NCBI GenBank assembly: GCA_950097015.1
Contig: CATNEN010000009.1
Span: forward strand, 1,364,001-1,428,000
Direction: 5' to 3'
Length of the DNA: 64,000 bases
Origin: Macrostomum hystrix
Lineage: Eukaryota; Animalia; Platyhelminthes
Positions within the stretch are counted from its first letter, which is position 1, and each line of letters opens with the position of its first letter. This document shows positions 15,662 through 50,641 of this stretch, piece after piece. The notes below the pieces were generated by a model that saw only the letters and a list, made by a program, of their open reading frames with translations, ran no database searches and was not told where the DNA came from. A program made the translations under genes and the position numbers.

Positions 15662-15896
15662 GGCGAGACAATGGGGGCAGTATTTAAAATGCTTAACTTG
15701 TTTAATTTACTTAATTAATTGTCCAAAGTTTCAACTGCATTGATTACATATTCCCAATCACATAAGATTATCAGCAAGCTTGTTACCATAGACTAGCAAT
15801 AGGGTTTTTAGTTGGTTACTTTACTAAGGTAAGTGGCGTAACTTATTTACACATTTTAGATTCTTAATTATTGTTTCAAATAAAAAAAACTACAAC

Positions 15897-17246: not shown

Positions 17247-17495
17247 GTTCAGTCAGTTAGTAAATCAAGCCAGCATAAAGCTAAAAAAATAATTAATTTA
17301 AAAATATTTTTAACTTTAATTAAAGTCCCCATAGAGTATACTTTAGCGAACACAGGTGAGTCAGTCCACAGACAAATCAAATGAATACAGGCCAGTCTGG
17401 GTATTAAGAACAAGAGATATTTTATCGGCCAAGAAATCAGCCCACAACCAAAGCCGCAACAGCAGCAACAGTAGAAATCCTTTCAACAATTAACA

Positions 17496-23925: not shown

Positions 23926-26900
23926 TCAGGGCAGCTGTTCCCTTATTTTAGATATTTCTATGATGTATTTTGCTAAAGCTTCAGCGGTTTCCCTATCGTC
24001 TTGAGCCATTATGTAGTTAGATTTTTCTTCTGCTGTTAAGGATATGAAATTGGGGGTTTTCCCAGAAACTTCCGTCTCAAATTTCGAACGTACTGCGCTA
24101 TACTTATTCCAAGTGCACTTAAAAAGGAAGTGGACCTCGTTTTCAACTTCTGTTTTGCACTTACTACATAATCTATTTGCATACGGAATTTTCGGTCTCG
24201 CAGTTCGCAATGTTTCGCAAGCTAGCTTATGGTTTCCTAGTCTAAACGAGGCTATGGTACGTCTCCACTCCGGGTTGTATATTTGTTGTAAATATTTTTC
24301 GGCTGAATAATATTGCTTGAAGGAGTAATAGAAGTGACTTAGCTTGCTTGAGTTCTGTGTCCTTTGTCTCCAATGGGTATCGAACTGAGAAACGAAATTT
24401 TTCCTGTGGTTTCCAATTGCTTTTGCAGGACTAATGCCTCTGCAGTTCAGCATAACCTCATTGTTGGTCTTTGCTTTGATTCCAACATCACTGTATGTTT
24501 GGTCCGCCAATAACTTGGAAATTATGGAGTCCGGCCGGCTTGTTATGGAGGCCCAGTACGAAATGCTTCTTTTCTGGATGTTGTATAATAAAGGCAATCT
24601 GCCTAACTCCGAGCGGGCCCCGTTGCCATCCGTATTTTGGCTGACTTGTAGTATGGCTTTACAGCACCTGATGTTTACTCTTTCAAAAAGACAGCGGTCC
24701 CAAGGACCCAGGTTCCACGAGACAAAAGCCCCCCAGGCCTCAGAGGCGTACAGAGCTATGCTTTCTATCATTGCTGTGCAGTACAGCATGAGCTGATTGT
24801 ATCTGACCGCCCCATGGCTGGCTAATTTCCTTAAGAGAAGAATAGGATATCCACATTTTTTGTTAATCTCTGTGGCATGGGAATCCACGGTTCCTTTAGC
24901 ATTGATGTGAAAGCCAAGATATTTCCATTCTTTGACGCTATCTAACAGTTGTCCCTGCAGAAATAGTTTGTTAGCCGTCTTTGATGGGTCAGGGCAACAG
25001 CTAATAACCTTAGTTTTTTGCATATTGATTTCTAGCTTGTGGCTCTGACAAAATTCTGACACTTTATCGAGGCCCTTCTGCAACTCTCGAGGATTCTCTC
25101 CAAAGATCACAAGATCATCGCAGTATAGCAAGTTGTTGATTTGTTCATCTTTAATGAAGGTGTCGCTGCGAAATGAATCCCTTAGCATTGTGCTCAAAGG
25201 ATCTATATAGAGTGAGAAGAGTAGAGGGGATAGGGGACAGCCTTGTCTTACTCCATTTGTTATGCTCCTTGCCTTAGTTGCTTGGCCATCTGAGATCTTC
25301 AGTTGGAATTTAGCTCCTGAGTACATGCTTTGTATTGCTTCGATTATTTCTGGGCTGACCTTTAACTCCCTAAGTCGTTGGAAAAGTGTTGGATGGTGGA
25401 CCATGTCAAATGCGCTTTTTAAGTCAAAGAACACTAAGTGAAATGGTCTTTTGCGACGCTTTTTGTTGTGGATCAACGTCAAGAGAGTGGCAATGTGGTC
25501 TGAAGTTCGGTAGCCCTTTCTATTTCCTATTTGACTGGCTGAAAGCAAGTCGAGGGTGCGAATATGAGTTTCTAGCTTTTCATAGATAAGTGAGGCAAAC
25601 AGGCGAGCCAGGGCAGGCAGCACGCTTATGGGTCTGTAGTTTTTGGGGTCACTACGGGAACCCTTTTTATAAATCGGTGTGATTAGGGCATTTGACCACT
25701 GTGCAGGAGTCTGGCCGAGTCTTACGCTTGCGTTAAAAAGCTTCAGAAGTACGGGTTTTAGCTTCTCTTGTCCGTAGATAATGTGCTCATTTGTTATACC
25801 ATCTATTCCTGCAGCCTTTCTTCTCTTTAGCTTTTTAACTGCTCTATCGAGATCTACGCAGCTAATTAAATCTTCGGGACTAACTGCTTCATCTGTGCGA
25901 TGCGGCTGGGTTCCCGAAGAAGGATGTGCGTTAAACACTTTGGTTAGGTTGTCCGCGATGTCAGCGATTGGGGCTTGAGATCTGTTAAGTCTCCTGCTGG
26001 GGAACAGCAACTCTTCTGCTCTTCTAAGACCGGACCAGAATCCCTTTGAGGTTCCGTTAGCCGCCATTTTCTGAATGCAGTCATTTATGTCCATCTGCTT
26101 AAGTTTCTTGAGCTGTTGTTTGTATTTTTTCGCTAGCCCATTATATTCTGATGCCAGCGCGCTGTCAGTTGGTCTACGTCTTTTTTTCCTGGCCACGTAC
26201 TTTAATGATTTGCTCAAGTTTCTTAGTGTCTCGTCTCGATTTGTCCAGAACTTGTTCGGAATGATTGTCTTTGCGCAGCTTTCTGCCACTGAGTCTCTAA
26301 GCAGGTTGGTCAAGCTCGAGAACAAATTTTCCAGGGATTTTCCATCGTGTGCGTCGATAGATTGCAACTTTCTAATTATTTCTTCGCTTTGTTTGTTATT
26401 CAATGCCTCAATGTAACTTCCCTGCGTTTCAGTGTCCCATCTTGGAGGCATTGGGAAGGATTCATGTTTTTCCTGGTTTGCGTGTTCGGGTTGGACATGA
26501 TCAGGAAAAATCAGAGTGACTGTTAGCGGGCAATGTCTGGACAGAAAGCTTTGAGGATGAATAAAGAAGTCTTTTATAATATCCACTTTATCCATGGATG
26601 CAATAGCGTAGTCTATGGTACTTCGGCCTAGTGTGCTACTAAAAGTGTAATTTCCCATAATGTCACCCTGAGTCATTCCGTTCAGAATCGTGCTCTTGGT
26701 CTCAGAGCACATTTCCATCAGTCTTAGTCCATGCTTGTTTTTCTCACAGTCCTGATTCTGTCTGGGAAACTTATCCCTAGTGCTGGACTGTAATGTGCCA
26801 GTTCGTGCATTGAAGTCACCTACTGTTAATACGGAGCCCTCTCTTGAGAAGAGCTGGATGAGATATTTAATCTCCTCCCATATATCTTCTTTGTAGTATT

Positions 26901-27360
26901 TAGAATTTTCCGGTGGGATATAACACCCTAAGATATACAGGGGTTCTTCAGACTGCTTTTGCTTTATTTTTAGTACCAGAGCGAAGTCAGATTTGTGCAC
27001 TAATGTGGTTCTCTTTGCAATATTATTTTTAACGAGGAAAACCATGCCATTTGATAATCTACCTTTGTTGATTCCCCTTGCCTTGATTCCATCTGCTCCA
27101 AAGCAGGTGAAATCTATCAGCGTGTTTGAGTCTAGCTGCTCCTGTTTGGCGTGGGTCTCACAGAGGAAAACTATGTCTCTATTCCTAATATGTTCGTGGA
27201 AACATGGTGATTCCATTTTGCATTCTCCACTGAGCATCAGTCCATCTATGTTCCAACTGGTGATAATCAACTCTGATTTATTATAAGTAACCTTCTTTTC
27301 GCAGCTGCCCTGTGTTTCAGTGACTATTCGGGAGTTAAAATTTAGCGTAGAAGTTAACAT
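23926..27360 (-). CDS. LINE ORF2: APE endonuclease + reverse transcriptase + C-terminal CCHC, 1144 aa
   Basis: SWNIDG, LCETH, GDFNAR, TIDY, SRH (SDH variant); KAAGIDG, PIYKKG..NYRPIS, FFDLKSAFD, GVRQGCPLSPLLFSLY, LLYCDD, KYLG; FRLGNHKL..LCSKC..ENEVHFLFKC. Confidence 0.95.
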   Translation of the reverse strand: MLTSTLNFNSRIVTETQGSCEKKVTYNKSELIITSWNIDGLMLSGECKMESPCFHEHIRNRDIVFLCETHAKQEQLDSNTLIDFTCFGADGIKARGINKGRLSNGMVFLVKNNIAKRTTLVHKSDFALVLKIKQKQSEEPLYILGCYIPPENSKYYKEDIWEEIKYLIQLFSREGSVLTVGDFNARTGTLQSSTRDKFPRQNQDCEKNKHGLRLMEMCSETKSTILNGMTQGDIMGNYTFSSTLGRSTIDYAIASMDKVDIIKDFFIHPQSFLSRHCPLTVTLIFPDHVQPEHANQEKHESFPMPPRWDTETQGSYIEALNNKQSEEIIRKLQSIDAHDGKSLENLFSSLTNLLRDSVAESCAKTIIPNKFWTNRDETLRNLSKSLKYVARKKRRRPTDSALASEYNGLAKKYKQQLKKLKQMDINDCIQKMAANGTSKGFWSGLRRAEELLFPSRRLNRSQAPIADIADNLTKVFNAHPSSGTQPHRTDEAVSPEDLISCVDLDRAVKKLKRRKAAGIDGITNEHIIYGQEKLKPVLLKLFNASVRLGQTPAQWSNALITPIYKKGSRSDPKNYRPISVLPALARLFASLIYEKLETHIRTLDLLSASQIGNRKGYRTSDHIATLLTLIHNKKRRKRPFHLVFFDLKSAFDMVHHPTLFQRLRELKVSPEIIEAIQSMYSGAKFQLKISDGQATKARSITNGVRQGCPLSPLLFSLYIDPLSTMLRDSFRSDTFIKDEQINNLLYCDDLVIFGENPRELQKGLDKVSEFCQSHKLEINMQKTKVISCCPDPSKTANKLFLQGQLLDSVKEWKYLGFHINAKGTVDSHATEINKKCGYPILLLRKLASHGAVRYNQLMLYCTAMIESIALYASEAWGAFVSWNLGPWDRCLFERVNIRCCKAILQVSQNTDGNGARSELGRLPLLYNIQKRSISYWASITSRPDSIISKLLADQTYSDVGIKAKTNNEVMLNCRGISPAKAIGNHRKNFVSQFDTHWRQRTQNSSKLSHFYYSFKQYYSAEKYLQQIYNPEWRRTIASFRLGNHKLACETLRTARPKIPYANRLCSKCKTEVENEVHFLFKCTWNKYSAVRSKFETEVSGKTPNFISLTAEEKSNYIMAQDDRETAEALAKYIIEISKIREQLP

Positions 27361-27568
27361 ACTCGTAGAAAGAGGGAGTAGTAGTCCTTAGAGTCAGTCA
27401 CGACGGGTTCAAAACCTTCAAAACCTGTTGCGCGGTATGGGAATTGACGGTATCAAAAATAGAAAGTTATTAGGCAAAGGAGTTAGAGGACCCGAGTTGA
27501 GCAGCTAAATGACTCCTCCACCCCCCCGGCGATTGAAGTTGTTGCCGGACAGGCTTGGACAGGCGGTC

Positions 27569-30091
27569 CTAGTCGACGCAACGAAACTGGCGGTCGTCGA
27601 GGCGCCTGACACCAACTTGTTGGTATCTGTTGCGGTACCCAAAGCTACTTCTGCGGTAGTTGCTGGGCTCGATATTGGCGCGATAGCCACTTATAAAGTT
27701 TTTGCGGTCTCTTTTGTTGTAGTCGTACTCGTTGCTGATTCGATAGCGGCTAGCACGACTTCTGTCAAAATAGCCGTTGGTGCTGATGCGGTGGTCTATT
27801 TCGCTACGGATGTAATTGGCATCTCGAACTGGGTAGCTGCTATGCGCTCGATAGTTCCTGTAGCCAGTTGCACCGCCGCCTCGTGACTCTCTGTAGCTGT
27901 GTTGATGCCGGTGATGCACTGTTTGCTGGCGCTGGTTCTCTGTGTTAGCCGGATGCGGCCGTACTTTCAGGTTTAGATTTCGAATGCATTTGGACATTAA
28001 CGCAAACAAAAAGTCCGCTCCGCTGCTGTTGAGTTCACCGTCGTAGAAGTGGATTTCATGAAAGTTAAATGTTAAAAGCTGATGTTTAACACCATACTCA
28101 CACAGTTCTTTCTCGAAGAGTTGTTCTGTTCGTGTCGAACTGTCTGGGATGATGAGTAGGTGCAGGCAATTCGCACCGTGTTGCCTTTGCCCAGCGTCAA
28201 TTGCAGTGACAGCTTTATATGCCACCTCCATTGATGGCTCATGGTTTAAGTCAATTACCAGACATTCTTGCGCACTGAAGTTTGGCTCTTGCAGTAATTC
28301 AATGAGCCTTTCTTGAGTGTTGTAGTAGACAACTCGAATTGTACTATTCGGGAAGAGTCTGCGATAGTCAAGGGCTTTCCCTAGCTTTGAGCTGACAACG
28401 ACTATATCATGCTTTTTCAGGCCTTCTTTAACTTTCTGTTTGGTACAACTGTTGCTTTCTGCCTCAGCTGGTTCCGAGTCCCTTGCTACAGCTCCTGATG
28501 CGTTCTCTGCATTTTTACTGGCACTGACTGCCATCGTTACATTTTTTGAAGATGCTGTTGGGTTCACTGAGCGCGAGGCCTTCTCAGCATATGTTTCCCG
28601 TCCTGCTCTTTCATTCTGCGTCTTAGTGAACGCCAGCGCTTGCAGACTGACCAGTTCACCGACCTTCTGCTCGAGGCTGTGGCTGATTTGTTGGCTTTTT
28701 ATTACTTCTGCCTTCACTGCTCTTTCTTCGCTAATGATAGCATCCTTAGTTGAGCTACTTGTTTGCTTTAGATGGTTCACAACGTCGGATTTTGTGATGT
28801 TTAGCGCTTTCAGTAGTTCCGTTTGACTTTCTTTGGCTTTTGCCTCTAACTGATGCATTAGACCGGTGGTCAAGGATTGAAGCGCATTGCGAGTCTTTTG
28901 AATGTACTCATCAATTGACAAGCTACTTTTCAGTTGTTTTACTTCACTGAGAACCGCTGCGACTCCTTCCTCGAGAGATTTCAAACGTTTCCAGTCTGTA
29001 TCCATCAGTAGGTTGTTCTCTGTGTTAGTTGCTGCATCTACTGGAATCAACTCTGTCTGTACGGCTTTATCGCTTTTGTCAGCTCCCTTCATGGGTGATC
29101 TCCTTTTTCGGAACTTTTTGGTCTTCGGGACCTTAAAGCTCGCATCTTCTAACACGGTCGTCTCTTCGGCGGACGCAGCTGATTCTTTGTCAGCCAGCTT
29201 TTGCTTCCGCTTCCCGAGTCGCGTCTTGGCTTCTTGAAGAGGCTGACTGAGGAATGAGATGTCAAAGTGGGCATCAGCTGCATCAGTCGATTCAGATTTT
29301 TTCCTTTCATCGATTATCTGCTCAGGCGTCTTTACTGCAATGTCCATACTCGTTTCTGAGGGCGTCGGCTCGTTGCGGCTTGGTACATCGTTTAATTCAG
29401 GCACAATGTGGCGAAATGTCACGTTGATGCGTGGTGCGCTTTCCCTCGTCTTTAGGACTCCATGTTTGAACTTGGTCTGACAGTCCCCTTGCATCACCAG
29501 CATGCTGCCTGGTGACATTATTAATGAGTAATGCCGTTTTTCGTCCGTGTTCTCAACAGTCAGGCATCTCTCAGCTCCAAGAGACAGGCTGGCAATGACT
29601 GGGTTGATGCCGAGACACTTCTCATTATCCTGATGCAGCTGGATTGAGTCTTGTCCATCTCGATATAGATTTAGGAGGACACTGTTGAAGTCAACATTAA
29701 ATTCTTTTGACAAGCACTGTTTAATCTGGAGCAGCTCCTCAGGCCAGTTGTTGTTCTCTTTCCATTCTACTCCACAGTAGGAGTATGGCTTTCCATAAGC
29801 AAATGTCCTGCGAGGTTCATTGTGCTCTATTCCTCTTATAACGCATCGTCGCGACTCCCAAGGAGTGGTTTGCAATAGTTTGTCAAATAGTACAGTGTGA
29901 TTTGAATCGAGGTAATCACGGCAGTAGATAAACGGCTGGCCATCCACTTTAGCGCACTCGTCCTCTGTAACTTGGACTGCTATCCATTTGTGCTTTCTCT
30001 CGACTAAATGAGGCTCTCCACTGTGTTGCCTTGTCGCCATGCTCTCGCTCAGCGCGGTGGGGGTGGAGTCGTCAGTAACTGTCAAGCTCAT
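27569..30091 (-). CDS. LINE ORF1, 840 aa: AlkB-family 2OG-Fe(II) dioxygenase + coiled coil + degenerate SGNH-esterase-like domain
   Basis: EPRRTFAYG..YSY, FNSVLLNLYRDGQDSIQLHQDNE (HxD), IASLSLGAER, GSMLVMQG..FKHGV (H), RINVTFR (RxxxxxR). C-terminal IVVVSS...FYDGELNSSGADFL resembles SGNH blocks I/V without the catalytic His. Confidence 0.85.
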   Translation of the reverse strand: MSLTVTDDSTPTALSESMATRQHSGEPHLVERKHKWIAVQVTEDECAKVDGQPFIYCRDYLDSNHTVLFDKLLQTTPWESRRCVIRGIEHNEPRRTFAYGKPYSYCGVEWKENNNWPEELLQIKQCLSKEFNVDFNSVLLNLYRDGQDSIQLHQDNEKCLGINPVIASLSLGAERCLTVENTDEKRHYSLIMSPGSMLVMQGDCQTKFKHGVLKTRESAPRINVTFRHIVPELNDVPSRNEPTPSETSMDIAVKTPEQIIDERKKSESTDAADAHFDISFLSQPLQEAKTRLGKRKQKLADKESAASAEETTVLEDASFKVPKTKKFRKRRSPMKGADKSDKAVQTELIPVDAATNTENNLLMDTDWKRLKSLEEGVAAVLSEVKQLKSSLSIDEYIQKTRNALQSLTTGLMHQLEAKAKESQTELLKALNITKSDVVNHLKQTSSSTKDAIISEERAVKAEVIKSQQISHSLEQKVGELVSLQALAFTKTQNERAGRETYAEKASRSVNPTASSKNVTMAVSASKNAENASGAVARDSEPAEAESNSCTKQKVKEGLKKHDIVVVSSKLGKALDYRRLFPNSTIRVVYYNTQERLIELLQEPNFSAQECLVIDLNHEPSMEVAYKAVTAIDAGQRQHGANCLHLLIIPDSSTRTEQLFEKELCEYGVKHQLLTFNFHEIHFYDGELNSSGADFLFALMSKCIRNLNLKVRPHPANTENQRQQTVHHRHQHSYRESRGGGATGYRNYRAHSSYPVRDANYIRSEIDHRISTNGYFDRSRASRYRISNEYDYNKRDRKNFISGYRANIEPSNYRRSSFGYRNRYQQVGVRRLDDRQFRCVD

Positions 30092-31992: not shown

Positions 31993-33471
31993 TCAATTGC
32001 CGCACAGACATTGTCGCGTCTTGATCAATCGGCCGTGTCTTGACACTGTCGTAGTCAATATATTGTGTGTGCATATACAATACGAGCGTCTAGATGCATG
32101 CAAAGCATCAGTCGCAGGTATAGTCGATTGCGATGACTGCACATCACTTATTGACATTGCGACATCGTCGTCAAGGTCGGCGGTCAGAACCAATTCTGCT
32201 GCGGCATCGGCATCTCCTTGCGGCACTGTCACATCAGATAACTGTTCATCCGAATCGTTGTTGACATCAGCAATGATGATCTCCATTGCGACATCAAACA
32301 TGTCATCGATGTGACTTGCTTCGGAATGGGCAGCGAAATCCGATCCAGCAGCAGCAGCAACACAATCCGTATTGGTAGACAGAAATTGCATAGCGGCAGG
32401 TTGCATCAAGTCGAGCAGAATCTGCGCCATTTCAATGTCATCACCGTGACCGGATGATGTACCAATACACACTGACTGCGTGCTGACATTGGCTTCGATT
32501 GAAACATCGGTCACACCGTTTTGTGCACTGACACCAACTGTCGCTGTTGTTACTCTTGGCGCACAGACAGGAATAAAAACAGGTAGCGGCACCGGAACGA
32601 AATACGGCACCTCGACAGTTGGAATCGGCAACATAGGCATCGCTGGTGATCCGATTGGCTCAATTTGCAACATTGGCATTGATGGCGATGGTACTGGCGA
32701 GTGATCCGATTGGATTGTTTCTGCTGCTGCTTCAATCGCATTGTGATTAAGCGGAGTAGATGTACAAATTGGATGCCGTACTGATCCAATTGACACGCTG
32801 TCCGCTTGGCTCACATGTTCAGCAGGCTCGTCAGTACTTGTTGCATAGATGATGCCTGATTCAGCTGCGCTATCTTCTATGATGATAGTTTCTGCTGGCT
32901 GCTCTGCTGCTGACTGCTCTGCTGATGGCTGCTCTGCTGCTGGCTGCTCTGCTACGGGCTGCTCTGCTACTGGCTGCTCTGCTGCTGGCTGCTCTGCTGC
33001 TGGCAGTCGACGGGCAATGTAGCGCTCGTGCATATAGTCGACAATCTCGCCGACCACAGCTGGTAGTGGATCCAGTTGTTCAAGCTGGACCACTTCGCCC
33101 ATTGCCGCTGCTCCCGCCACTGCCACTGGCTGAGCTGGTTGGCCACCGACGCGACGCTGCGGATTCCGCTTACATCTATATAGATGATGCAACATGTTGG
33201 ACGTTATTTTGTTGCAATGCGGACACGCTAGCACACGTCCACCGGCAGCGACATCCACACCAGCCCGCTGTAGTTGCAGCATCTTCCAGACGGCACTTCC
33301 ACGCTCCTTAACCGACGCGAATAGCGATGGCCTTTGACCAACAGGTAGGACTGTCCAGTCAAATTCGGCATGGACAGCTTTATGCGCCTCTATAAAATGT
33401 CTTCGCATCATATTGGCGCGGATTTGCTGGCCGCAGAAATGGCAGAAGCGGAGTCCGTTGTTGTCTTCCAT
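31993..33471 (-). CDS. Zinc-finger protein, 492 aa (C2H2 + C2HC), recombinase-less paralogue of the YR gene N-terminus
   Basis: CHFC-x11-H-x4-H and CPHC-x9-H-x3-C; aligns with exon 1 of the YR gene (NMMRRHFIEAHK/NMRRHFIRNHK, WKMLQLQRAGVD/WKIVRLQRAGVD); AAEQP repeats; ends SRHGRLIKTR. Confidence 0.75.
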   Translation of the reverse strand: MEDNNGLRFCHFCGQQIRANMMRRHFIEAHKAVHAEFDWTVLPVGQRPSLFASVKERGSAVWKMLQLQRAGVDVAAGGRVLACPHCNKITSNMLHHLYRCKRNPQRRVGGQPAQPVAVAGAAAMGEVVQLEQLDPLPAVVGEIVDYMHERYIARRLPAAEQPAAEQPVAEQPVAEQPAAEQPSAEQSAAEQPAETIIIEDSAAESGIIYATSTDEPAEHVSQADSVSIGSVRHPICTSTPLNHNAIEAAAETIQSDHSPVPSPSMPMLQIEPIGSPAMPMLPIPTVEVPYFVPVPLPVFIPVCAPRVTTATVGVSAQNGVTDVSIEANVSTQSVCIGTSSGHGDDIEMAQILLDLMQPAAMQFLSTNTDCVAAAAGSDFAAHSEASHIDDMFDVAMEIIIADVNNDSDEQLSDVTVPQGDADAAAELVLTADLDDDVAMSISDVQSSQSTIPATDALHASRRSYCICTHNILTTTVSRHGRLIKTRQCLCGN

Positions 33472-33670
33472 TGCAGCTTAAATATAGTCGTTCGCTGGCT
33501 AGCCTGCTGAATAATCGACAGAGTGGTCGTTGTGGCTGAATTTTAATTATCGATTTGCGTGCGCGCGCGCATATATTTACCTAGCACTGCTCATATCCTG
33601 TACAGAGCAGCAGTCAGACACATAGACATAGACAGGCATCGTCAACTGGGTCTAAGCTATTTCCATATAT

Positions 33671-33970
33671 AGTATTTTCGCGAAAATACTGATATGCTCT
33701 ATAAACAAAGGTAAGGGCAGTATTTTTGCAAAAGTTCTTAAAGTAGTGTGCATGGCTACATCTTATGGTATTTTCGCGAAAATACTGCTATGCTATTAAA
33801 CAAAGGTAGTTGGCGGTATTTTTGCAAAAGTTCTTAAAGTAGTGTGCATGATTACATCTTTGGTATTTTCGCGAAAAGACTGCTATGCTATTAAACAAAG
33901 GTAGTTGGCGGTATTTTTGCGAAAATTCTTAATGTAGTGTGCATGGCTACATCTTATGGTATTATCGCGA
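33671..33970 (+). repeat. Array of 4 palindrome-centred units (~96 bp)
   Basis: Perfect 20-bp palindrome AGTATTTTCGCGAAAATACT at 33671-33690; cores at 33679, 33775, 33870, 33966. Confidence 0.9.
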
Positions 33971-34273
33971 ATGTAGATACGCGGCGGTTGAAGACAATAA
34001 GAAGACAATATTTTTGCGAAAGTACTTTAAGTATTCATGATGACTATATCTAATGGTAATCAATAACCAAATATGACTTGACTTCATTATATTTTATTAT
34101 TATTCATGCCGCGAATACAACTTGCAACAGGTTCACTCATGTATTTTTGCTTGAGCGAATTAATTGGGTTAAATAAATAGCTGGCATTAATTAAACGGCG
34201 AACAGGAAACTACAATTAGCTGTATTAAGTCTACCTAAAACTAGTGCTGCTACTGCTGCTGCTGCTGCTGCTG

Positions 34274-34693
34274 TTACTGCTCAATTCGATATCGGCGGCT
34301 CCGGAGCAACTCTCGCAGTCTAGCCCTTTGCTGTACGCCGCGCCAGTAGTCCAGGCCGTGTAGAATGTGCTGCAGCTCCAAACATGTGTCCTCCAGCAGG
34401 CCTAGCAGCTCGGCCAAGTCGAAGGCCTCGTTCTCTGTTAGGCAGGTCACCTCCAGGATGGTCTCGTAGCCCGCAGCTGTCTTGTGTTGTAGCAGCCAGT
34501 CCAGGAGGCTCTTCATCAGGGTGTGCAGCTGGGTGACGTTCAGCTCAGCAGTCGGGCAGTGGCGCTGCAGGCAGGTTAGCTGCTCCAATCGTCCTCGGTA
34601 AGTCAGGAACGGGGCCAGACAGGCGATGTCGCATCTGGCCAGGAGTGCCACAGTGGCCGGCGAGCCGAACAGCGCCACAGGATGCGCATTCAT
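34274..34693 (-). CDS. Small helical hypothetical protein, 139 aa (paralogue of 16866-17246)
   Basis: ATG start, GC-rich coding island, clear protein similarity to 16866..17246 despite DNA divergence. Confidence 0.7.
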   Translation of the reverse strand: MNAHPVALFGSPATVALLARCDIACLAPFLTYRGRLEQLTCLQRHCPTAELNVTQLHTLMKSLLDWLLQHKTAAGYETILEVTCLTENEAFDLAELLGLLEDTCLELQHILHGLDYWRGVQQRARLRELLRSRRYRIEQ

Positions 34694-35029
34694 CGTGAGT
34701 TCTACACAACCAACAATGTCGTGAGTGCAACAGCAGCGCGTCTAACACTAGCAGAAGTAGAATTAGAATAGGAAGCAGAGTTCTAAATGGAAAGTAAATA
34801 CAGTATTTTCGCGAAGGTAAGGGCAGTATTTTTGCAAAAGTAGCGTGACTACATCTTATGGTATTTTCGCAAATGCAGATACGTATTCTCAGACAAAGTG
34901 ACTTTTTACCATAGACAAATTTAGTGTATTTCTGTAAATTGCCAAAACTCACGAATGAGTTTTTTCGCGAAAAGACAATATGTACTATATTGAATACTTG
35001 TAAATGAAAAATAGTGTCTGTTTTTGCAA

Positions 35030-36020
35030 AAATACTGCTATGCTATTAAACAAAGGTAGTTGGCGGTATTTTTGCAAAAGTTCTTAAAGTAGTGTGCATG
35101 GCTACATCTTAAGGTATTTTCGCGAAAAGACTGCTATCCTATTAAACGCAGGTAGTAAAGGTAGTTTGCGGTATTTTTGCAAAAGTTATTAAAGTAGTGT
35201 GCATGGCTACATCTTAAGGTATTTTCGCGAAAAGACTGCTATGCTATTAAACAAAGGTAGTTGGCGGTATTTTTGCAAAAGTTCTTAAAGTAGTGTGCAT
35301 GATTACATCTTTGGTATTTTCGCGAAAATACTGCTATGCTATTAAACAAAGGTAGTTGGCGGTATTTTTGCTAAAGTTATTTAAGTAGTGTGCATGGCTA
35401 CATCCTAAGGTATTTTCGCGAAAAGACTGCTATGCTATTAAACAAAGGTAGTTGGCGGTATTTTTGCAAAAGTTCTTAAAGTAGTGTGCATGGCTACATC
35501 TTAAGGTATTTTCGCGAAAAGACTGCTATCCTATTAAACGCAGGTAGTAAAGGTAGTTTGCGGTATTTTTGCAAAAGTTATTAAAGTAGTGTGCATGGCT
35601 ACATCTTAAGGTATTTTCGCGAAAAGACTGCTATGCTATTAAACAAAGGTAGTTGGCGGTATTTTTGCAAAAGTTCTTAAAGTAGTGTGCATGGCTACAT
35701 CTTAAGGTATTTTCGCGAAAAGACTGCTATCCTATTAAACGCAGGTAGTAAAGGTAGTTTGCGGTATTTTTGCAAAAGTTATTAAAGTAGTGTGCATGGC
35801 TACATCTTAAGGTATTTTCGCGAAAAGACTGCTATGCTATTAAACAAAGGTAGTTGGCGGTATTTTTGCAAAAGTTCTTAAAGTAGTGTGCATGATTACA
35901 TCTTTGGTATTTTCGCGAAAATACTGCTATGCTATTAAACAAAGGTAGTTGGCGGTATTTTTGCAAAAGTTATTAAAGTAAGTAGTGTGCATGGCTGCAT
36001 ATTATGGTATTTTCGCGAAT
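35030..36020 (+). repeat. Array of 10 palindrome-centred units (95-105 bp, two alternating variants)
   Basis: Cores at 35121, 35226, 35321, 35417, 35513, 35618, 35714, 35819, 35914, 36014. Confidence 0.92.
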
Positions 36021-36420
36021 GTAGATACGTATTCTCAGACAAAGTGACTTGTACTTTTTTACCATCGACAAATTTAGTATATTTCTGCTAATTGTCAATA
36101 ATCACGAATGATTTTTTCGTGTATCTTCGGCTTTTAAGAAAACGAGAATAGTTTAATCTTAGTTTAATCAGATGATAATCAAATGATTTCATTTGATAAT
36201 TTATTTAATTACTAACGAAATAATCACAGTGTTGACAATCATTAGCATCTTAACAATATATAAGAGAGCAACAAACAGAACATATGAGATTCTCGGTTGT
36301 AAAGGGACGGGTATTAGTGGGGGTATCACAATTGACACAATTGATAATTGATAATAGTTTGGCAAATCAGACAATCAGCACATATAAAGTCAGGTGACAC
36401 GACTGGGACAATATGAGCAT

Positions 36421-39400
36421 TCAGATGTCCAGTCTAGTTCTCGAACTGATCAGGCGCCCAGATCGCGTCCTGTATTCCGTTCGACGAACCATGAGTAGCT
36501 CAGAATCCGAGCTGGTCTCATTGTCATTGCTGACGTGCTGTTGTTCACCATCATCACCTTCTTCGTCGATATCGTCGTGAACGTTGCCTTGTCCAGCCGA
36601 TGCTCCAAACATCGGCGGTTGACTAAGACTGCGTCGTCTAGACGATGTAGACGAAATAGGCGATGGTGTTGCTGAATCGATGGCCGGCTTTGTCGACTCG
36701 GTGTTGTCCGTTGTTGAACATCTAGGACTAACCGTAGCGGGTCGCATTGTCGACATTCGAGGTCGCTTCTTGTCAGTGGCCTTGCAAATGGACGATCGTC
36801 GAGTGCGTCGCTTGCGTGTGCGTTGACTATGTGGCATCACAATGTCATCAGCAGGTAGAGGAGATGCAGCCGATGAATTGGTTGCGTCCAGATCAACGCT
36901 ACAGGCGGCAGAGCGACGACGCTTCGTGTCGTTTTCGGCTATTGGATGTCGCTGATGTCGACGATCAAGTGGCCGATTGTGACAGAATGTCTCGAAGCAT
37001 CCTCTGACGTCGTCGGCGACCATCAGATTGGCCTGCTGTTTGGCCAGGCGTCCATACGCATTCACGACACAGTTGCGCGATGTGTCGTACAGAGGCACCA
37101 GCTGGTCTAGCTTGTCGGGATGCGCGTGCACATAGGCCGACAGTACATTTCGACGACCATCGCCCATGCGATAGGGCCGATCGATGACCAACTCGGCGCC
37201 CTGCTTGACAAGCGTGCTGAAACTTGTCGAGTCACGCTGCTTGCCACGATGCGTAGGAAACAGCAGACATTTGCCTGGCCTGACATGGATGTTGCACTCG
37301 GCGAAGTATGGCAATAGAAAGTTGTCTATCCATTGCAGTAGACATTCGCCGACTTTGCGTGGCGCAGTCCAGCTTGCACCTTTACCACGACCGCCCTTTT
37401 TGTGTGCCACTTCGGTAGGCGGCAGGACTGTGACAATGGTGGAGGACGTTGATACGCCGCTATTGAGTGCAGCATCCAAATAGCAACGCCGAATCGCGAC
37501 CCATGGACGTAGTCGATTGGCATGGACAATTGCTGCACAGAAGAAGGCCAGTTCACGCGTGATCGGCATAATAAATGTATTCCATTTGCCGACGACGTTG
37601 GCCATTCGACGTGCACATTGTCCAATGCGACCCCAGTAGCCCTTCACGGGTAGATGAGACCACGAATGTTTGGCGACCATATCAATCAGGCAGTCTAGCC
37701 GGTTGTGAATGATGCGCCATTCGTCAGCGGTCAGGAACTTATCCGTGTAGGACAGCTGGCGTTCGTCATCGCGCAGGTGATAGATATTCTCTTGCCGCTG
37801 ACGAATCAATCCAATGCAAGCCTGTACATGTTAAAGGGTTATGAAAGAGAAAGTACATGCAGTAGCTTCTACAATTGTTCGTGATATATCAACTAACATA
37901 GTATACAATATGCGACACAACAACACTGCTCACCATGATTGATTCGATGCGGCTAGTCAACAGACCAGATACTGCAGTCTGATGATAGAGAATACCATCT
38001 TTGCGCGGGTCAGGACAGGCAGGCAATTCTGACGCGGCCTTGACAATGTCGGCATGCACGTTGGCAAACAATCCATCTGGTGGCGAGGTCAATTGGAACG
38101 CGTTCATAACACTAGGAGCACCGAAGTCGTTGTTGGCTGCTAGAAACTTCTTCGCGCCGCTCAATATGTTATGAAGCTCGTTCATTCGCTGTCCAACAGT
38201 CGATGGTTTCCAGATATGGCGCTTCACCATCTCGTCCAAATCGAATTGGATGCGCGCTGGATTGATGAACCACATCTCGACTGTGACATTGATTGCGTGT
38301 AGGAGACGACTAGTTGTAGCATGATAGTTCCGCTGGATTGCTTTCCTACGGCTAACATGCGATGCGTTCTCTTCTACACAGCAATGACCCTTGAACCAGA
38401 TGTCGCCGACATTGTCTAGTTGCTTGTACATGTGTTCAGATGCAACGTGGTAGTCTGGGCCGTCGAAAACAACAAGCCGAGACTTCTTGTGCCTCCGTTG
38501 CAATACAAGCTGCTCTTTGGCCGATCGCTCGTCGTCACTGACAGAAGCATCAGTATTTTCCACGTCAGATTTAGAGGTCTGAGTCTCTGCTTGTCGCTGA
38601 CTGACAGCATTGGTGACTCCGACCGGAACATAGTCTGACGTATACTGGAGGATTGCTTCTGTCAGATTGACCAGATTCTGCAAGCCAGTACACATGCTAT
38701 TAACGCGAGGATGCTCAGCGTTGTGGGCTTTCTGCAGAATCTCGTTTAGGCCGGCCGCATTCAGACGCAGTCCATTGATATATTCTGTTCGGACGAAAAT
38801 GGGGTGAAAATAAAATTATGAATACTCAGTAACTCAGTTTCCTCGAAATAATAAGTAATAGTTTATAGCACTTACCGATCATTGCCATTTCATGTTTGGC
38901 TTGGATTAAGACAGGTACGTCGCTATAATTGCTTTGCAGTCGATCCAAGTCATTGCTGACAATCTCGGCCATGTATGAAGATTGTACTTTGGATGGACCC
39001 GGTTGCGCATGCGGGGACGTAGTTTGACGAACACCAGATGTCAAGTCACATAAACGTTTAGTTGACTGTTGCGTGATCGTCTGTTTGTTTGCAGAAGTAC
39101 TCGCATACAGCTCACCTACGTCTACTACGGCATACTGTTCGTTGTCATCCGATGAAACACTGCCGTTATCGGATACCACCGCTATGTCTTGAGCAGCCGG
39201 TAGACCCTTACACGGGCGTGCAATGTGCCTTTTCAGATGACGCACATATTTGCCACAGTGCGGACATGGCGAAAGGACATTATCGACTCCCGCTCTTTGC
39301 AACCGGACAATCTTCCATATATTCATGGCCTTGACTTCATAGGACGCAGATTCAGCTGGTCGCTTGCTTAATGGTACGCAATCCCAATCAAAAGACTCGA

Positions 39401-39491
39401 CAAAGTCCTTGTGGTTCCGGATGAAATGCCGTCGCATATTAGAACGTAGAATCGTCATTTGACATAGGAAACAATTAGTTTGTGCGTCCAT
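36421..39491 (-). CDS. Three-exon 955-aa zinc-finger / tyrosine recombinase (Crypton-like)
   Basis: Exons 39491-38876, 38784-37934, 37821-36421 join in frame (GTAAGT..ACAG, 91 nt; GTGAGC..ACAG, 112 nt). YR-like signature ANRLRP (R), HKK (K), LLFPTHRGK, MGDGRR (xxxR), LYDTSRNCVVNAY (Tyr 33 aa after the Arg). Two N-terminal zinc fingers; C-terminal TRSGRLI. Confidence 0.72.
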
Positions 39492-40094
39492 TTTACCTGC
39501 TGAATTATTATTATCTCCTGAATTGCTTATATACTGCTTATAACAGAAGAAATTTTGCAAAGATTTGCAAGCGAGCGCGCTCGGCTTCTGACTTAAGCTG
39601 CTATCGTGACCCGTACGACAGTTTAATCACATAAACTATCAATCAAGGTTTGTCTATGGCGAAATAGCATAATATTGAACTCATAATATATTTAACGTTG
39701 CTATATTGTCTACTCATAGTAGAGTAGGTAGTTTCGAACAGCATATGAACATAAACACGAATAATTAATTGATTTCTGAGTTATGTCAACAATTTTAATC
39801 TATATGTTGAGAAAGCCTTTAAATTATTGTTGATTATTCGAGACCTATTTTCGCGAAAGTACATATGTATTCTCAAGCGAAGGTCAATGTAGTCTTTTTG
39901 CGAAAATACTTTTGTGTCAATATGATTACTGTTTCTGATGGTATTTTCGCGAAAAAACATGTTTCCTAAACGAAAGTAAAGGCATTATCAAAAGAAGGTA
40001 ACAGCCGTATTTGAGCAAAAGTACGTTAATAATAATAAATATTTTTCATTAGTAGTAAATTATTAGCAGATTTTTTTAATTAGAAAAATATTTG

Positions 40095-40175
40095 GTAATG
40101 ACTGGGATTCGAACCCGAGCCACCGGTAACTATAAAAGAATGCTATTGACCTGCACGCCAGATCACTTGTAACTG
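40095..40175 (-). ncRNA. tRNA-derived Pol III-type unit, copy 3 (inverted module)
   Basis: Minus strand reads GTGATCTGGCGTGCAGGTCAATAGC...GGCTCGGGTTCGAATCCCAGTC followed by TTTTT. Confidence 0.4.
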
Positions 40176-40683
40176 GATGGTGTGTTATCTGGCTATTTAT
40201 ATTGATTTTCTTTCGGATGTTGGATTTTTAATGATTTTCGTCTGCTAATGGTAAAATCTTGAGAACTTTTCCATTTTTTCTTACAGAATGACAAGATATA
40301 TTGAGAGAGTATGGAAAGTACTGCTGATAATGCGGATATATATTCAAACGAAGGTAGAACAGTATTTTAGCAAATGTACTTTAAGTGTATTACCATTGAT
40401 TATACAGGGCTAGGTATTTTCGCGAAAGTACATTTTCGCGTTATACTTTTGCGAAAGAACGAAGGTAAATATGTTCTTGCGTCTATGTAAACTCGGTGCA
40501 TTCGGGAAAGCACAATAAAATAGTTCAGGACAAAGAGACAAAGAGATTTTTCGTGAAATGACCACATGATCTGTTCTATTTTTAGAAATACACTACGGAG
40601 ATCAAAAAAAAGGTCTTTTAGTCTTTTTGTGCGCAAGCCTACTGTTAGTAGTAGGTATAGCAATAGAGCTATATCGAAAATTT

Positions 40684-41005: not shown

Positions 41006-41524
41006 GCAAATTTTGTGCACTTTTAACTAGCACCCAGCCGCGAATTTACATACATACATGAGCTACCTAGTCTGACCGGTCACATTTCAGTTTTTACTGT
41101 CACTATTGAACGAAATAAACGTGAATTAGCCTAACATATAAACAACTCTAATACAGGCTGTAATTAACAGATGTACAATTCTTAATCATACAATTAATTG
41201 TTATTGTAATTGACAGATTCGCACCTACTATCGTTTGTTTTTTGTGATTTAGCAATAGTTCTTGTCTGTATTAAAATTAGAAACCCAACAAGAAGCCAAT
41301 TCTAACACTTGTAGCATAAAGCTAATATAAAAGTGCAAGCAAAGCGCAGTTATAAAGCATACTTTTGTGTGTGCTTTGCCTTTTTAACTAAAACTAACAG
41401 TTTTAGTTTAATTTATATTTAACATAAACTTCTCTCGCGCTGCACATTAACAATGTTTAGTAGCTTGGTCAGCAAATAAAGGAAGACAAAAAAGACCCGG
41501 GATTACCCATCACTTAAAAATACA

Positions 41525-42392
41525 CACATGAGATGCATATGCCAAACAGATGCCAGACATGCCAATGCCAGACACAATGCCAAACAGATGCCTGACATAT
41601 GCCAATGCCAGACACCATGCCAAGCAGATGCCTGACATATGCCAATGCCAGACACAATGCCAAGCAGATGCCTGACATATGCCAATGCCAGACACCATGC
41701 CAAACAGATGCAAGACAGACGCCAGACAGATGCCGATGCCAGACACAATGCCAAACTGATGCCAGACAGATGCCAGACACTATGCCAATGCCAAACAGAT
41801 GCCAGACAGACGCCAGACAGTAGCTAATGCCAGACACCATGCCAGACACTATGCCAATGCCAAACAGATGCCAGACAGACGCTAGACAGATGCCAATGCC
41901 AGACACCATGCCAGACAGACGCCAGACAGATGCCAATGCCAGACACTATGCCAAAAAGATGCCAGACAGACGCCAGACAGATGCTAATGCCAGACACAAT
42001 GCCAGACACCATGCTAAACAGATGCCAGACAGACGCCAGACAGATGCCGATACCAGACACAATGCCAAACTGATGCCAGACAGATGCCAGACACTATGTC
42101 AATGCCAAACTGATGCCAGACACATGCCAGACACCATGCCAATGCCGAACAGACGCCAGACAGATGCCAATGCCAGACACAATGCCAAACTGATGCCAGA
42201 CATGCCAATGCCAGACACAATGCCAGACAGACGCCAGACAGATGCCAATGCCAGACACAATGCCAAACTGATGCCAGACACATGCCAGACAGATGCCAAT
42301 GCCAGACACAATGCCAAACTGTTGCCAGACACATGCCAGACAGATGCCAATGCCAGACACAATGCCAAACAGATGCCTGACATATGCCAATG
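41525..42392 (+). repeat. Degenerate ATGCCA/GACAG satellite
   Basis: Continuous mosaic of ATGCCAGAC, ATGCCAA, ACAG; explains the many MPD/WH pseudo-ORFs. Confidence 0.9.
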
Positions 42393-42559
42393 CGAAGTGA
42401 GTTTGATTTAGTCGCTTCAATTAGCTTGCAGCCATAGACGGTGAATTCAATATAGTCGTTTTTAGCGCGCGCAACGAGATCGTGATTTTTATTTAGTCAA
42501 AGTGAAATGAATACGGTCAACGAGATCGTAAACTTTCATAAAAGGCGCAAAAACACATA

Positions 42560-47200: not shown

Positions 47201-48557
47201 GGGGGGATTTAATTTTTATACTCATTTAATACTTTTTTTATGGGTTATACAAATTTATAGAAACTTGATACATATTTTATACAATTTTATACAAACTTTT
47301 ACAATTTTATACAAACTTATACCATATTTTTGTTTTTTGGGGTGGGGGGTTCGTTGGAGCATTGTCAGTGTCGGGCTTGCAAAAAGCATGTACGCATGTA
47401 CCTAGACACTGCTTGTGTTCTAGCGGACACCCTTGCCCCGTTGCTCGTCATTCCCTACGTTTATTCCCTGCCCTTCCCGAGGCAATTGACATTTTTAGCC
47501 ATCATGAACTGTGAAGTTTGTTTTTTGAACTTGCCAAATCTGTCAGGTCATGTTTCAGGATCCTGGACACCTCGTGGATGCCTGGCCAGAGAAATGTAAA
47601 AGTTGCGGGGCGTTTTTCTCAAGTCGATCGAGGACTGAAAGAGCTTTCTTTGACACCAAGTGCAGCTCGATTGACCCATCAGAAGTGCCCCGATCGGCCC
47701 CGATAGTGAAGCTAATCGAGTATTGGCATCGAATTTCGGCTATAAATCAATCAGACGACTTGAAGTCCAAGCAACTAGACGCGTCCATCGAGTGGATTCC
47801 TCCATCAAACAGTAGGAGCCCAGTTTTCCGAATTTTACCCGTAACTTTTTTCGGCGACCTCCCCCAGTCTTCGGAGTAGCGTCAATCAACTCGGCGCAAC
47901 GAATTCTATCGGAAAAAGTTGTCCCGCAATATGGGTAAACAAAAATTTTTTTCGCAAAAAATATAATGACTTCTAAATAGAAAGCAAATGTACAGTATTT
48001 TCGCGAAAAGACTGATATGTTCTTAAACGAAGGAAAGGGCAGTATTTTTGCAAAAGTTCTTAAAGTAGCGTGGCCACATCTTATGGTATTTTTGCGAAAG
48101 TGCATGCGTATTCTTAGACGACGTGTCTTGTACCTTTTTCACCACAGACACATTTAGTATTTTTGCAAATTGCCAAGAGTCATGCATGTATTTTTTTCGC
48201 GAAAAGACTATATACTGTGTACTATATTGAATACTTATGAGTGAAAAATAATGGCAGTTTTTGCCAGAATACTAACGATACGATGACGAATATATTTTTG
48301 CGAAAAAATGTGTTCTAAAACGAATACAAAATGCTGCATTTGTGTGAAAGTACTTTGAGTACTAAAATACAAACAAGAATGCTTAACGTAGTGTGATGAT
48401 TGTTGGTGATGGTATTTTCGCAAAAAGATTAGTGTATTTTCGATCACTTACAAAACAACACCAATATGTAAATCAAATAGTTAAGATAATCAGAAGCTTT
48501 ATAAAATAACTGTAACTAATCATAATGAATGTATTATTTTATAATATCATTTCAAAC

Positions 48558-48767
48558 TTAGGCCTCCTCAATTGCAATCGCTACTGCTGCTGACGCCTCC
48601 GCCTCTTCAGCTGCGGCATACAATAGGTCGTCATCAGCAGGGTCAAATGTACAGCTACTGGCTGCCATCGCTGCTGCTGCTGCTGCTGCTGACGCCTCTG
48701 CCTCTTCAGCTGCGGCATACAATAGGTCGTCGTCAGCTGGGTCAAATGTACAGCTACTGGCTGTCAA

Positions 48768-48802
<35 letters not shown>

Positions 48803-49079
48803 ACGCCTCTGCCTCTTCAGCTGCGAAATACAAAAGCTCATCGTCAGCTGAGTCTAAGCAATTGACTGCCATCGCCGCTTCGACCTCTTCAGCTACGGCG
48901 TATAACATTTGGTCATCTGCCAGGCCGAATACATAGCTATATGATGAATTGTATGTTTCATCATACCCGTAATCATCATAGCCTGGCTCTTCGTTCAGCC
49001 CAACGTCCTCGTCGTGACAGTTGGATGTTTCCGCATCGTTTAGAGTTGGCGCTGATGATGATGATGGTGTTGCAGGCAT
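48558..49079 (-). CDS. Acidic repeat protein, 173 aa, copy 2
   Basis: Paralogue of 15008-15661 with 3 repeats plus 1 degenerate repeat and longer poly-Ala linkers. Confidence 0.7.
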
Positions 49080-49313
49080 GGCGAGACAATGGGGGCAGTA
49101 TTTAAAATGTTGAACTTGTTTTATTTACTTCATTAATTGTCCAAAGTTTAAACTGCATTGATTACATATTCCCAATCACATAAGATTATCAGCAAGCTTG
49201 TTACCATAGACTAGCAATATGGTTTTTAGTTGGTTACTTTACTAAGGTAAGTGGCGTAACTTATTTACACATTTTAGATTCTTAATTATTATTTCAAATA
49301 AAAAAACTACAAC

Positions 49314-49760
49314 ATGTCATCCCTGGGTGGGCGGCACAATGGCGGAGATCAACGAGATATCGACAGAGAGGATCACAACTCTGGCAACGACAAACCGATC
49401 TCGTGCCCTACCGTCAGTAGCAGCACAGATGTCGTGATTGGCACTGAGCGACGTCGACGAAGGCACAGCTCGGATAGTAGTTCAGACTCGGATTTTGCTA
49501 TTCTGCCTTCACGTCAACGTGTTCAGTACGTATGGCATCGTCCAGGTGTCGTGCGCATTTACAATCAGAGATTTTCTATTGTGAACGCCAATCCGACACG
49601 GGATTTAGCCGGCCAATTGCAACTGCCGCAGCATGCGCAAGTGACCGATATACAGTCACCAATTGTAATCAGTAGCAACAACAATGGCGGCACTGGCACT
49701 GAAAGAGAGCGCGGCAATGAAAATCGTGCTGCTAATAACTCAGATTTGAATGACATGTAG
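49314..49760 (+). CDS. Hypothetical protein, 148 aa, copy 2
   Basis: Paralogue of 15897-16355. Confidence 0.6.
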   Translation: MSSLGGRHNGGDQRDIDREDHNSGNDKPISCPTVSSSTDVVIGTERRRRRHSSDSSSDSDFAILPSRQRVQYVWHRPGVVRIYNQRFSIVNANPTRDLAGQLQLPQHAQVTDIQSPIVISSNNNGGTGTERERGNENRAANNSDLNDM

Positions 49761-50254
49761 CAATTCTTTTGTTAAGCACTGTTGCCATTAGTTATAATGA
49801 AATTAATTAACTGATTAGTATAATTAAAAGTTGAAGGTATTTGATTAACACATCTGAGTATTCAATGTCGACAGTGCATGATGCCTGCAAATGTTTTAAA
49901 CTACTTTTACTTTCACTAGCTCTCGTTCACTTACGTGGTATATTCAAAGCATAAGACAGTTTGCCGTCACTATCACCATTAACCACAATCAGATGACTGA
50001 TGAGATCAGTCAGTAAATAAAATATTAATACGCGAACACACATGTGTGCAGTTAGTCAATCGGTTTTTATTAAATTTCACCAATATAATTAAATACTCCA
50101 TACATATATATACAATTTCATTAATTAAACAAATAATTAATCGTGTTATTCTACAATTAGTCCGATTTGCAAAGTCGCAAGAGCAAAAAGAAATGTGTAA
50201 ACTATATATAATACATAAAATTCTGATTCTGTATTCTGATTCTGTACCAGCATA

Positions 50255-50641
50255 ATGGCAAGCAGCAGCAGCAACAACAGCAGCTTTTATTTGTTCCCGG
50301 CGCCATTCCAGGCATTCGTTCTTGCCTTCGCTGCCGAGGAGTTGGAGGATCACTGAGGAAAGCGAGTGAGGCAGCGAGTAAGGTGGCGGCAGCGGAGGTC
50401 GGGACGCCGGGACGGCGCCGGGCGGAGGATGTGATGGCCGCAGCTATGCGGCGGGTCCGAGCGGCCATGCTACGCATGGCCAGGGCTCGCCGCATAGCTG
50501 CGGGGCTTGACCCCTATGTAAGTAGTAACTTTCGATTATTATTTTAAATTGAATATTTGCGATAACACATCTGATAACCAAGCTAACAAACTAAATGAAA
50601 CCTAAAACCCATCTTTCATCCCGCAGCCCGGTGTACTGTGA
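50255..50641 (+). pseudogene. Frameshifted paralogue of the 17496-17858 gene
   Basis: LFPAPFQAFVLAFAAEELED then TGA; shifting the frame by one base restores LRKASEAASKVAAAEVGTPGRRR...AMLRMARARRIAAGLDPY. Donor and micro-exon are retained. Confidence 0.65.

Follow-up and report, generated by a model that had tools for sequence, protein, structure and literature searches.

A spliced zinc-motif gene of the flatworm Macrostomum hystrix with a predicted tyrosine-recombinase fold

What does a flatworm gene encode when its last exon carries the residue order of a tyrosine recombinase (YR), and when both auxiliary histidines of that catalytic set appear to be replaced? The question is raised by a locus on the minus strand of a 64,000-nucleotide stretch of the genome of Macrostomum hystrix (assembly GCA_950097015.1, contig CATNEN010000009.1, positions 1,364,001 to 1,428,000), hereafter the window, in which an earlier reading of the bare sequence (the original prediction) had joined three open reading frames (ORFs) into one zinc-finger/recombinase gene. 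We propose that the locus carries an intact gene whose product is a highly divergent tyrosine recombinase guided by zinc fingers, and that this enzyme belongs most likely to a Crypton-type element, which lacks reverse transcriptase (RT), or to a recent derivative of such an element; the probability that we give to this reading is roughly 0.6. The proposal is built on the structure of the gene, on a small family of relatives, on the predicted fold of its last exon and on the residues that are invariant within that fold.

The spliced gene and its relatives

The three-exon gene is real and intact (Table 1). Three listed ORFs of the minus strand (38826-39560, 37889-38695 and 36421-37809) join by splicing into a coding sequence of 955 codons with no internal stop. 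The single spliced gene that had been claimed was thus recovered at the same coordinates with an uninterrupted translation, and its introns of 91 and 112 nucleotides, with phases 1 and 0 and canonical GT..AG ends, were likewise reproduced, homology across the junction being available for intron 2 only. The bounds of intron 2 are tight: the exon-2 frame meets a stop at 37891, the exon-3 frame is open only from 37830, and a protein of Macrostomum lignano (P0001) can be aligned gaplessly with the spliced product over the junction of residues 489/490. Of the 23 GT/AG pairs that would keep the frame, the one taken for intron 1 fits the splice consensus best by a wide margin; it sits in an unconserved linker. 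The backing of intron 1 by consensus only would suit a decaying pseudogene or a chance string of ORFs without a product, an explanation that we find scarcely credible, given that 955 codons in three exons contain neither stop nor frameshift, that the match to a flatworm protein is collinear and gapless across the exon 2/3 junction, and that the motifs are conserved at 20-44% overall identity. Because the open frames of 462, 268 and 244 codons are collinear with a single foreign protein, that of M. lignano, they are not due to chance.

Relatives of the gene are few. An exhaustive phmmer search with residues 1-300 of exon 3 against 1.84 billion representative proteins gave four matches, namely two M. 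lignano fragments, one Logan read assembly and one JGI metagenome sequence. The M. lignano cluster includes a protein of 1084 residues (P0008, UniRef A0A1I8G604) that is collinear with all three window exons, as residues 7-100 of exon 1 match its residues 114-207 at 38% identity, residues 309-488 of exon 2 match 493-671 at 35% and residues 500-777 of exon 3 match 673-950 at 44%; in M. lignano there are at least seven gene models at 93-99.6% identity. A profile search added only two further short fragments, one of them a diverged second copy (P0010) from the same metagenome sample as relative P0004 and the other (P0011) from a sibling sequencing run. Word-indexed homology searches with exon 3 alone, and with residues 490-950 of the full-length M. 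lignano protein, returned no match, two metagenome scans for related loci found none, and literature searches yielded no description of this family. The lineage seen so far consists of M. lignano with its several near-identical gene models, two sibling sequencing runs and one environmental metagenome; as far as these sequences go, the family is real, occurs in several copies wherever it turns up, and has very few members in current databases. In the Logan assembly (L001, from SRR31628394), about 70 codons with one stop, at 1190-1395, break the frame between the Arg-I region and the PPTEV hairpin, and probably represent an intron or an acidic insertion that is absent from the window gene.

The protein begins with two zinc motifs, the first of C2H2 pattern and the second of C2HC pattern, and the window gene, a paralogous ORF at 31993-33471 and P0008 (n = 3) share all eight Cys/His residues without change, as they do a WK...LQR.G linker. 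The spacer of motif 1 is 11 residues long, against 12 in the C2H2 pattern C-x2-4-C-x12-H-x3-5-H, and no zinc-finger profile of Pfam, zf-C2H2 included, gave a match; the UniRef name of the M. lignano homolog is 'C2H2-type domain-containing'. The N-terminal DNA-binding fingers of the original prediction therefore stand as zinc-binding motifs that are invariant in three sequences, whereas DNA binding is a role that these motifs may have. An acidic and Ser-rich linker separates them from the conserved middle domain, which is possibly of core-binding type. The exon-2 domain bears a weak resemblance to the first part of exon 3, which was not significant (E 0.052). Relatives do not align past residue about 777, and the basic clusters of the tail beyond it, RKRRTRR and KKRPR, may be nuclear localisation signals.

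Fold and candidate active site of the exon-3 domain

The AlphaFold2 model of exon-3 residues 1-300, made from a six-sequence alignment, has a mean predicted local distance difference test score (pLDDT) of 71 and a predicted template-modelling score (pTM) of 0.67, and shows helices and a beta-hairpin in the helix / beta-hairpin / helix order of an integrase catalytic domain. In a Foldseek search of the PDB with this model, the 50 best matches were, without exception, tyrosine recombinases or YR-fold proteins, including XerD, XerH, XerA, Cre, lambda Int, YopR/MrpR and the S. aureus integrase 3nkh, which was the best match (E 7.8e-4, template-modelling (TM) score 0.56 on target). Among the 50 best matches in BFVD, the named ones were integrases, Vlf-1 or recombinase-domain proteins and the rest were unnamed or uncharacterised; the best had an E-value of 6.2e-4, and TM-scores across the best PDB and BFVD matches reached 0.56-0.58. 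A predicted structure without the YR catalytic fold would have spoken against the original prediction; the model matched that fold in all of the 50 best PDB matches. Because the matches are unanimous across PDB and BFVD, we regard the tyrosine-recombinase fold predicted for this domain as solid. A second AlphaFold model, of the exon-2 and exon-3 domains of M. lignano, had a pLDDT of 45 and was set aside for any claim on the fold.

The structural matches also include the Vlf-1 proteins of baculoviruses and nudiviruses and the recombinases of phaeoviruses and a hytrosavirus, and several large ORFs near the gene have no Pfam match, one of them with a Walker-A motif. Both observations would suit a large DNA virus, or an element resembling one, that became endogenised and whose integrase this would be, with the neighbouring unannotated ORFs in the same insertion. 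Such an origin is nevertheless very unlikely: phage integrases score at least as well as the matches from eukaryotic viruses, spliceosomal introns interrupt the gene, around it lie a long interspersed nuclear element (LINE), a Tc1/mariner element and satellite arrays, and the window yielded no viral hallmark gene.

The motifs R(LRP), HKK, LLFP, DGRR, LYDTS and NAY, on which the original prediction had relied, are all found in exon 3, and their register was examined by profile-profile comparison (hhalign) of the family with XerD, XerC, lambda Int and Cre. Against XerD, LLFPT aligned with VLFPS, D710 with H244 and R713 with R247, and T736 and Y745 fell on the residues named in Table 1; a permissive run of low confidence placed R592 on R148, and in the same run K630 lay in the hairpin one residue and a gap away from XerD K172, its exact register being uncertain. 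The spacings within HxxR (3), from Arg-II to His-II (23) and from His-II to Tyr (9) are all identical to those of XerD, and the expectation of a Tyr about 9 residues after the His/Trp position is borne out by T736 and Y745. Invariant columns number 42 of 294 among relatives that share 20-44% identity, and include R592, K630, R712, R713, T736, S737 and Y745. The latter lies within helix 249-281 of the model and is invariant in every relative that covers the position; the short fragment P0010 retains DARR...LGTS...NY. At the His-I position the window protein has D710, preceded by G709, and the relatives have D, D, D and T, while no relative carries a His at either auxiliary position that it covers. 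The non-canonical catalytic set that had been predicted, with Asp (Gly adjacent) at the first His and Thr at the His/Trp position, is thus placed likewise by hhalign and proves to be family-wide. At the level of sequence alignment, we take it as confirmed that the family keeps Arg, a candidate Lys, Arg and Tyr and has, as a family trait, replaced His-I by Asp (Thr in one relative) and His-II by Thr. R592, K630, R713 and Y745 are candidates for the minimal chemistry set of the superfamily.

We propose a series of steps by which such a protein could act. It would be a nuclear DNA-binding protein, whose fingers and helical domain would bind a specific site; Y745 would then attack the DNA backbone to form a 3'-phosphotyrosyl intermediate, from which strand exchange would follow. 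In this role the protein would be the recombinase/transposase of a Crypton-type (RT-less, YR-only) element or of a recent derivative. DNA cleavage, mobility and a target site are what we infer for this protein, and the activity that the original prediction held possible is likewise read from conserved residues.

Genomic surroundings and the choice between mobile element and host protein

The window is rich in repeats; besides several unannotated ORFs it holds an APE+RT LINE and a Tc1/mariner transposase. The gene unit (36118-39844) neither contains nor borders on an RT, and the three exons encode no other enzymatic domain; the closest RT, at 23926-27360, is that of an APE-type LINE, a distinct element some 9 kb off, beyond another ORF and satellite arrays. 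The ORF of the zinc-domain paralog consists of PAAEQP-type low complexity beyond that domain, and no recombinase domain was found in it or downstream of it.

A domesticated, non-catalytic YR descendant is the explanation that has to be weighed most carefully against an active enzyme. In that case the host would use the protein as a zinc-finger DNA-binding or chromatin factor, its integrase fold serving for DNA binding only, which we consider possible, if on the unlikely side. No family member retains either auxiliary histidine; the window holds one copy of the gene, which has normal introns, a TATA-like box and a poly(A) signal; near it lies a paralog with the zinc domain but no recombinase domain, as would be expected in a host gene family; and YopR and MrpR are among the structural matches; ZMYM-type proteins likewise join zinc fingers to a YR-derived domain (PMC3212892). 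On the other hand, DUF3504 proteins lack most of the catalytic tetrad, whereas this family has kept both Arg, the candidate Lys and the Tyr unchanged at 20-44% identity, and it does not match PF12012. Near-identical copies in M. lignano and two diverged metagenome copies also stand against domestication, as does the absence of the family from nearly all of the 1.84 billion representatives; a distribution so patchy and multi-copy is more typical of a mobile element than of a conserved host gene.

Several results weigh against the Crypton-type recombinase that we favour. Pfam, NCBIfam and PHROGs, searched at E up to 10, gave no usable match for any exon and none to an integrase family, the sole profile trace being a faint PHROG integrase match of relative P0004 (E 0.18). 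A PDB profile search with the family profile returned nothing, and a PDB search with the single sequence returned no integrase, its only match being an unrelated hypothetical protein (E 0.83); there was no match to PF12012 (DUF3504), the Crypton-derived Pfam family, through which alone the comparison with Cryptons was made. The Foldseek E-values and TM-scores, despite which the fold assignment is solid, are modest, and the hairpin loop around K630 is modelled at low confidence (pLDDT below 50). The signal of the hhalign comparison was weak, as P was 0.012-0.018, a reversed template scored 16 against 25.7, and one of 40 column shuffles reached the real score. Intron 1 is a candidate intron, placed from its splice consensus only. 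The gene is single-copy within the 64-kb window, in which no terminal repeats, target-site signature or empty site were found; hints of multiple copies come from the M. lignano models (at least seven) and from the two diverged copies in one metagenome sample, and the copy number in M. lignano may presumably reflect that genome's own duplication. With both histidines lost, the site looks like a degenerate one by the Crypton R-H-R-Y criterion (PMC3212892).

The gene is flanked by a satellite (Table 1) whose perfect palindrome, GTATTTTCGCGAAAATAC, occurs 43 times in the window with up to 3 mismatches, against 0.01 expected, in tracts at 3227-4229, 13897-14881, 33672-36024, 39845-40431 and 47995-48429. 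Its core, TTTCGCGAAA, could be a binding site for a dimeric protein. The satellite arrays were considered as the element's own terminal repeats and rejected, because the same satellite with its end unit recurs without the gene at four other places in the window, 3227-4229, 13897-14881 and 47995-48429 among them; the palindrome satellite is therefore a dispersed repeat and does not form the termini of the gene. A clean insertion into one palindrome was rejected as well: the similarity of the left flank to other satellite copies ends at about 36113, in mid-palindrome, but the right flank begins the next satellite unit and not the other half. The flank breaks at palindromes are suggestive of a site-specific junction, without the signature of a clean insertion. 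A bolder explanation is an undescribed eukaryotic YR superfamily, of which the gene would be a founding member, with an R-K-D-R-T-Y site, in which Asp and Thr would do the work of both histidines, a C2H2/C2HC fusion and the palindrome GTATTTTCGCGAAAATAC as its target. The unit of 3.7 kb at 36114-39844 may then be a satellite-targeting mobile element, with its left junction at a palindrome centre and its right junction at a palindrome edge; we hold this superfamily to be unlikely.

Other features of the window are recorded here in their own right. Two minus-strand ORFs without a Pfam match, 34274-34693 and 16866-17246 (139 and 126 residues), share 40% identity, and one of the pair lies between the two satellite arrays beside the gene. 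Two copies of a multi-kb repeat (13893-17858 and 47995-50641; 77-88% identity) open with the palindrome satellite and carry Ala/Glu-rich repetitive ORFs. Upstream of the gene, at 39941-40322, is a short dispersed repeat with a tRNA-like 3' half (GGGATTCGAACCCGAGCC), which recurs at 7443-7871 and 10200-10402 (inverted); it may be a tRNA-derived short interspersed nuclear element, though ARAGORN calls no tRNA. A long array of ATGCCAAACAGATGCCAGACA-type repeats, spaced by 11/29/40 nucleotides, occupies 41520-42430 and gives spurious ORFs on both strands. On the plus strand, 10875-13608 holds a Gln-rich ORF of 652 residues followed by one of 223 residues with a Walker-A motif (YLYGPSGVGKTH), neither with a Pfam match, and the two may be one split gene; 18593-20650 (plus strand) is a Cys-rich ORF of 685 residues with a CDKCKVEG motif, likewise without a match in Pfam, whose product has the look of an unclassified protein of transposase type. 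In the region 23926-30091 (minus strand), an ORF of 840 residues with a 2OG-Fe(II) oxygenase/AlkB-like domain (PF13532, E 3e-25) lies directly upstream of the LINE ORF2 (APE+RT, 1144 residues) on the same strand, and the two together look like a LINE whose ORF1 bears an AlkB-type domain; in the literature, AlkB acquisition by transposable elements was found only for orchid Ty3/Gypsy elements (PMC9289625).

Table 1 Positions in the window of the gene, of the motifs and domains of its predicted protein, and of the features that flank it (residues are numbered in the 955-residue protein).
Feature	Position	Strand	Description
TATATAAG	39526..39533	-	35-42 nt upstream of ATG; possible TATA box, by sequence
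Exon 1	38876..39491	-	616 nt; ATG at 39491; residues 1-205 and first base of codon 206
Intron 1	38785..38875	-	91 nt; GTAAGT...CAG; phase 1; basis, splice consensus alone
Exon 2	37934..38784	-	851 nt; residues 206-489
Intron 2	37822..37933	-	112 nt; GTGAGC...CAG; phase 0; basis, sequence and homology across the junction
Exon 3	36421..37821	-	Residues 490-955 and TGA stop
AATAAA hexamer	36200..36205	-	216 nt past stop; possible polyadenylation signal, by sequence
Zinc motif 1, C-x2-C-x11-H-x4-H (C7, C10, H22, H27)	39411..39473	-	Conserved in 3 sequences
Zinc motif 2, C-P-H-C-x9-H-x4-C (C76, C79, H89, C94)	39210..39266	-	Conserved in the same 3 sequences
Conserved middle domain, residues 309-488	37937..38476	-	Predicted all-helical; homology to M. 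lignano
Tyrosine-recombinase-fold catalytic domain, about residues 565-770	36979..37596	-	AlphaFold2 model and Foldseek
R592, candidate Arg-I	37513..37515	-	Family-invariant; hhalign to XerD R148
K630, candidate hairpin Lys	37399..37401	-	Sole invariant Lys between predicted strands 128-133 and 149-154 of the model
D710-G-R-R713, HxxR box	37150..37161	-	Asp at His-I, R713 at Arg-II; R712 and R713 invariant
T736, His/Trp-II position	37081..37083	-	hhalign to XerD H270; Thr-Ser invariant in relatives covering the position
Y745, candidate nucleophile	37054..37056	-	hhalign to XerD Y279; invariant; 9 residues past T736
C-terminal tail, Ser/Arg/Asp-rich, unconserved	36424..36954	-	Basic clusters RKRRTRR and KKRPR
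Single-exon ORF of 492 residues	31993..33471	-	About 3 kb downstream, same strand; first ~105 residues are a zinc-domain paralog, 41% identity
Satellite arrays, 96-105-nt unit with 18-nt palindrome GTATTTTCGCGAAAATAC	33661..36117	.	3' side of gene
One degenerate unit of the palindrome satellite	39845..39967	.	5' side of gene; starts with the palindrome

Comparison with known recombinase systems

To our knowledge, no class of eukaryotic DNA transposons is rarer or less well understood than the YR elements, and we know of no animal Crypton-type enzyme that has been biochemically characterised. A lineage that is invisible to sequence profiles and was found by structure prediction suggests that the diversity of eukaryotic recombinases is under-counted. 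Activity in the absence of both auxiliary His would extend what is known of the superfamily's chemistry, and such a protein could serve genome engineering as a compact eukaryotic recombinase guided by zinc fingers. An inactive protein would be an independent recruitment of the recombinase fold as a DNA-binding module beside zinc fingers, parallel to ZMYM/WOC.

Cryptons have an R-H-R-Y tetrad, and those of animals are without terminal repeats (Kojima and Jurka 2011, PMC3212892). The gene described here resembles Cryptons (CryptonA/I/F/S) in being a eukaryotic, intron-containing gene with a YR fold as its sole enzymatic domain, with no RT in the unit, no terminal repeats and a patchy taxonomic distribution. 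It differs from them in that R, R and Y are present and the His of the tetrad is Asp/Gly, so that R-H-R-Y is incomplete, in having no detectable similarity to PF00589 or PF12012, and in the make-up of a protein of about 955 residues with an N-terminal C2H2/C2HC domain and an extra helical domain. In DIRS, Ngaro and VIPER elements, RT and RNase H accompany the YR, and no RT belongs to the window gene unit.

An incomplete R-H-R-Y tetrad marks domesticated DUF3504 genes (PMC3212892), whose proteins (WOC, ZMYM2/3/4, QRICH1, KCTD1 and KIAA1958) are likewise animal proteins that combine zinc fingers, of MYM type in ZMYM, with a recombinase-derived domain. Most catalytic residues have been lost in the DUF3504 proteins, whereas the window family keeps Arg, a candidate Lys, Arg and Tyr; moreover, its fingers are not of MYM type, it has no PF12012 match and it is not broadly conserved across bilaterians. 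The SPbeta prophage repressors YopR and MrpR share the integrase fold, are among the structural matches and illustrate that this fold can serve DNA binding alone, but they are bacterial phage proteins without zinc fingers and rank below true recombinases in Foldseek.

The best structural matches are the bacterial and phage enzymes (XerD, XerH, XerA, Cre, lambda Int and 3nkh), which share the order Arg, Lys (K630 being the candidate), (H)xxR, (H), Tyr, and with XerD the 3/23/9 spacing of the last four positions is identical. Identity to these enzymes is only 10-14%, however, and the window protein, the product of a eukaryotic gene, has Asp at His-I, Thr at His-II, a much longer beta-hairpin loop, zinc fingers and a long disordered tail. 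Active integrases without His-I are found in archaea, as SSV1-type (R..KxxR..Y) and pNOB8-type (R..YxxR..Y) enzymes (PMC8371274). In these, Lys or Tyr stands where HxxR has its His; they differ from the window family, where Asp or Thr takes that place, and are archaeal or viral, and the likeness is one of motif alone. Because the SSV1- and pNOB8-type integrases are catalytically proven (PMC8371274), the loss of His-I is compatible with activity. Set against these systems, both the fold and eukaryotic YR genes in general were known before, and what is new is a lineage beyond all sequence profiles, with Asp and Thr family-wide in place of both histidines and a fused C2H2/C2HC domain.

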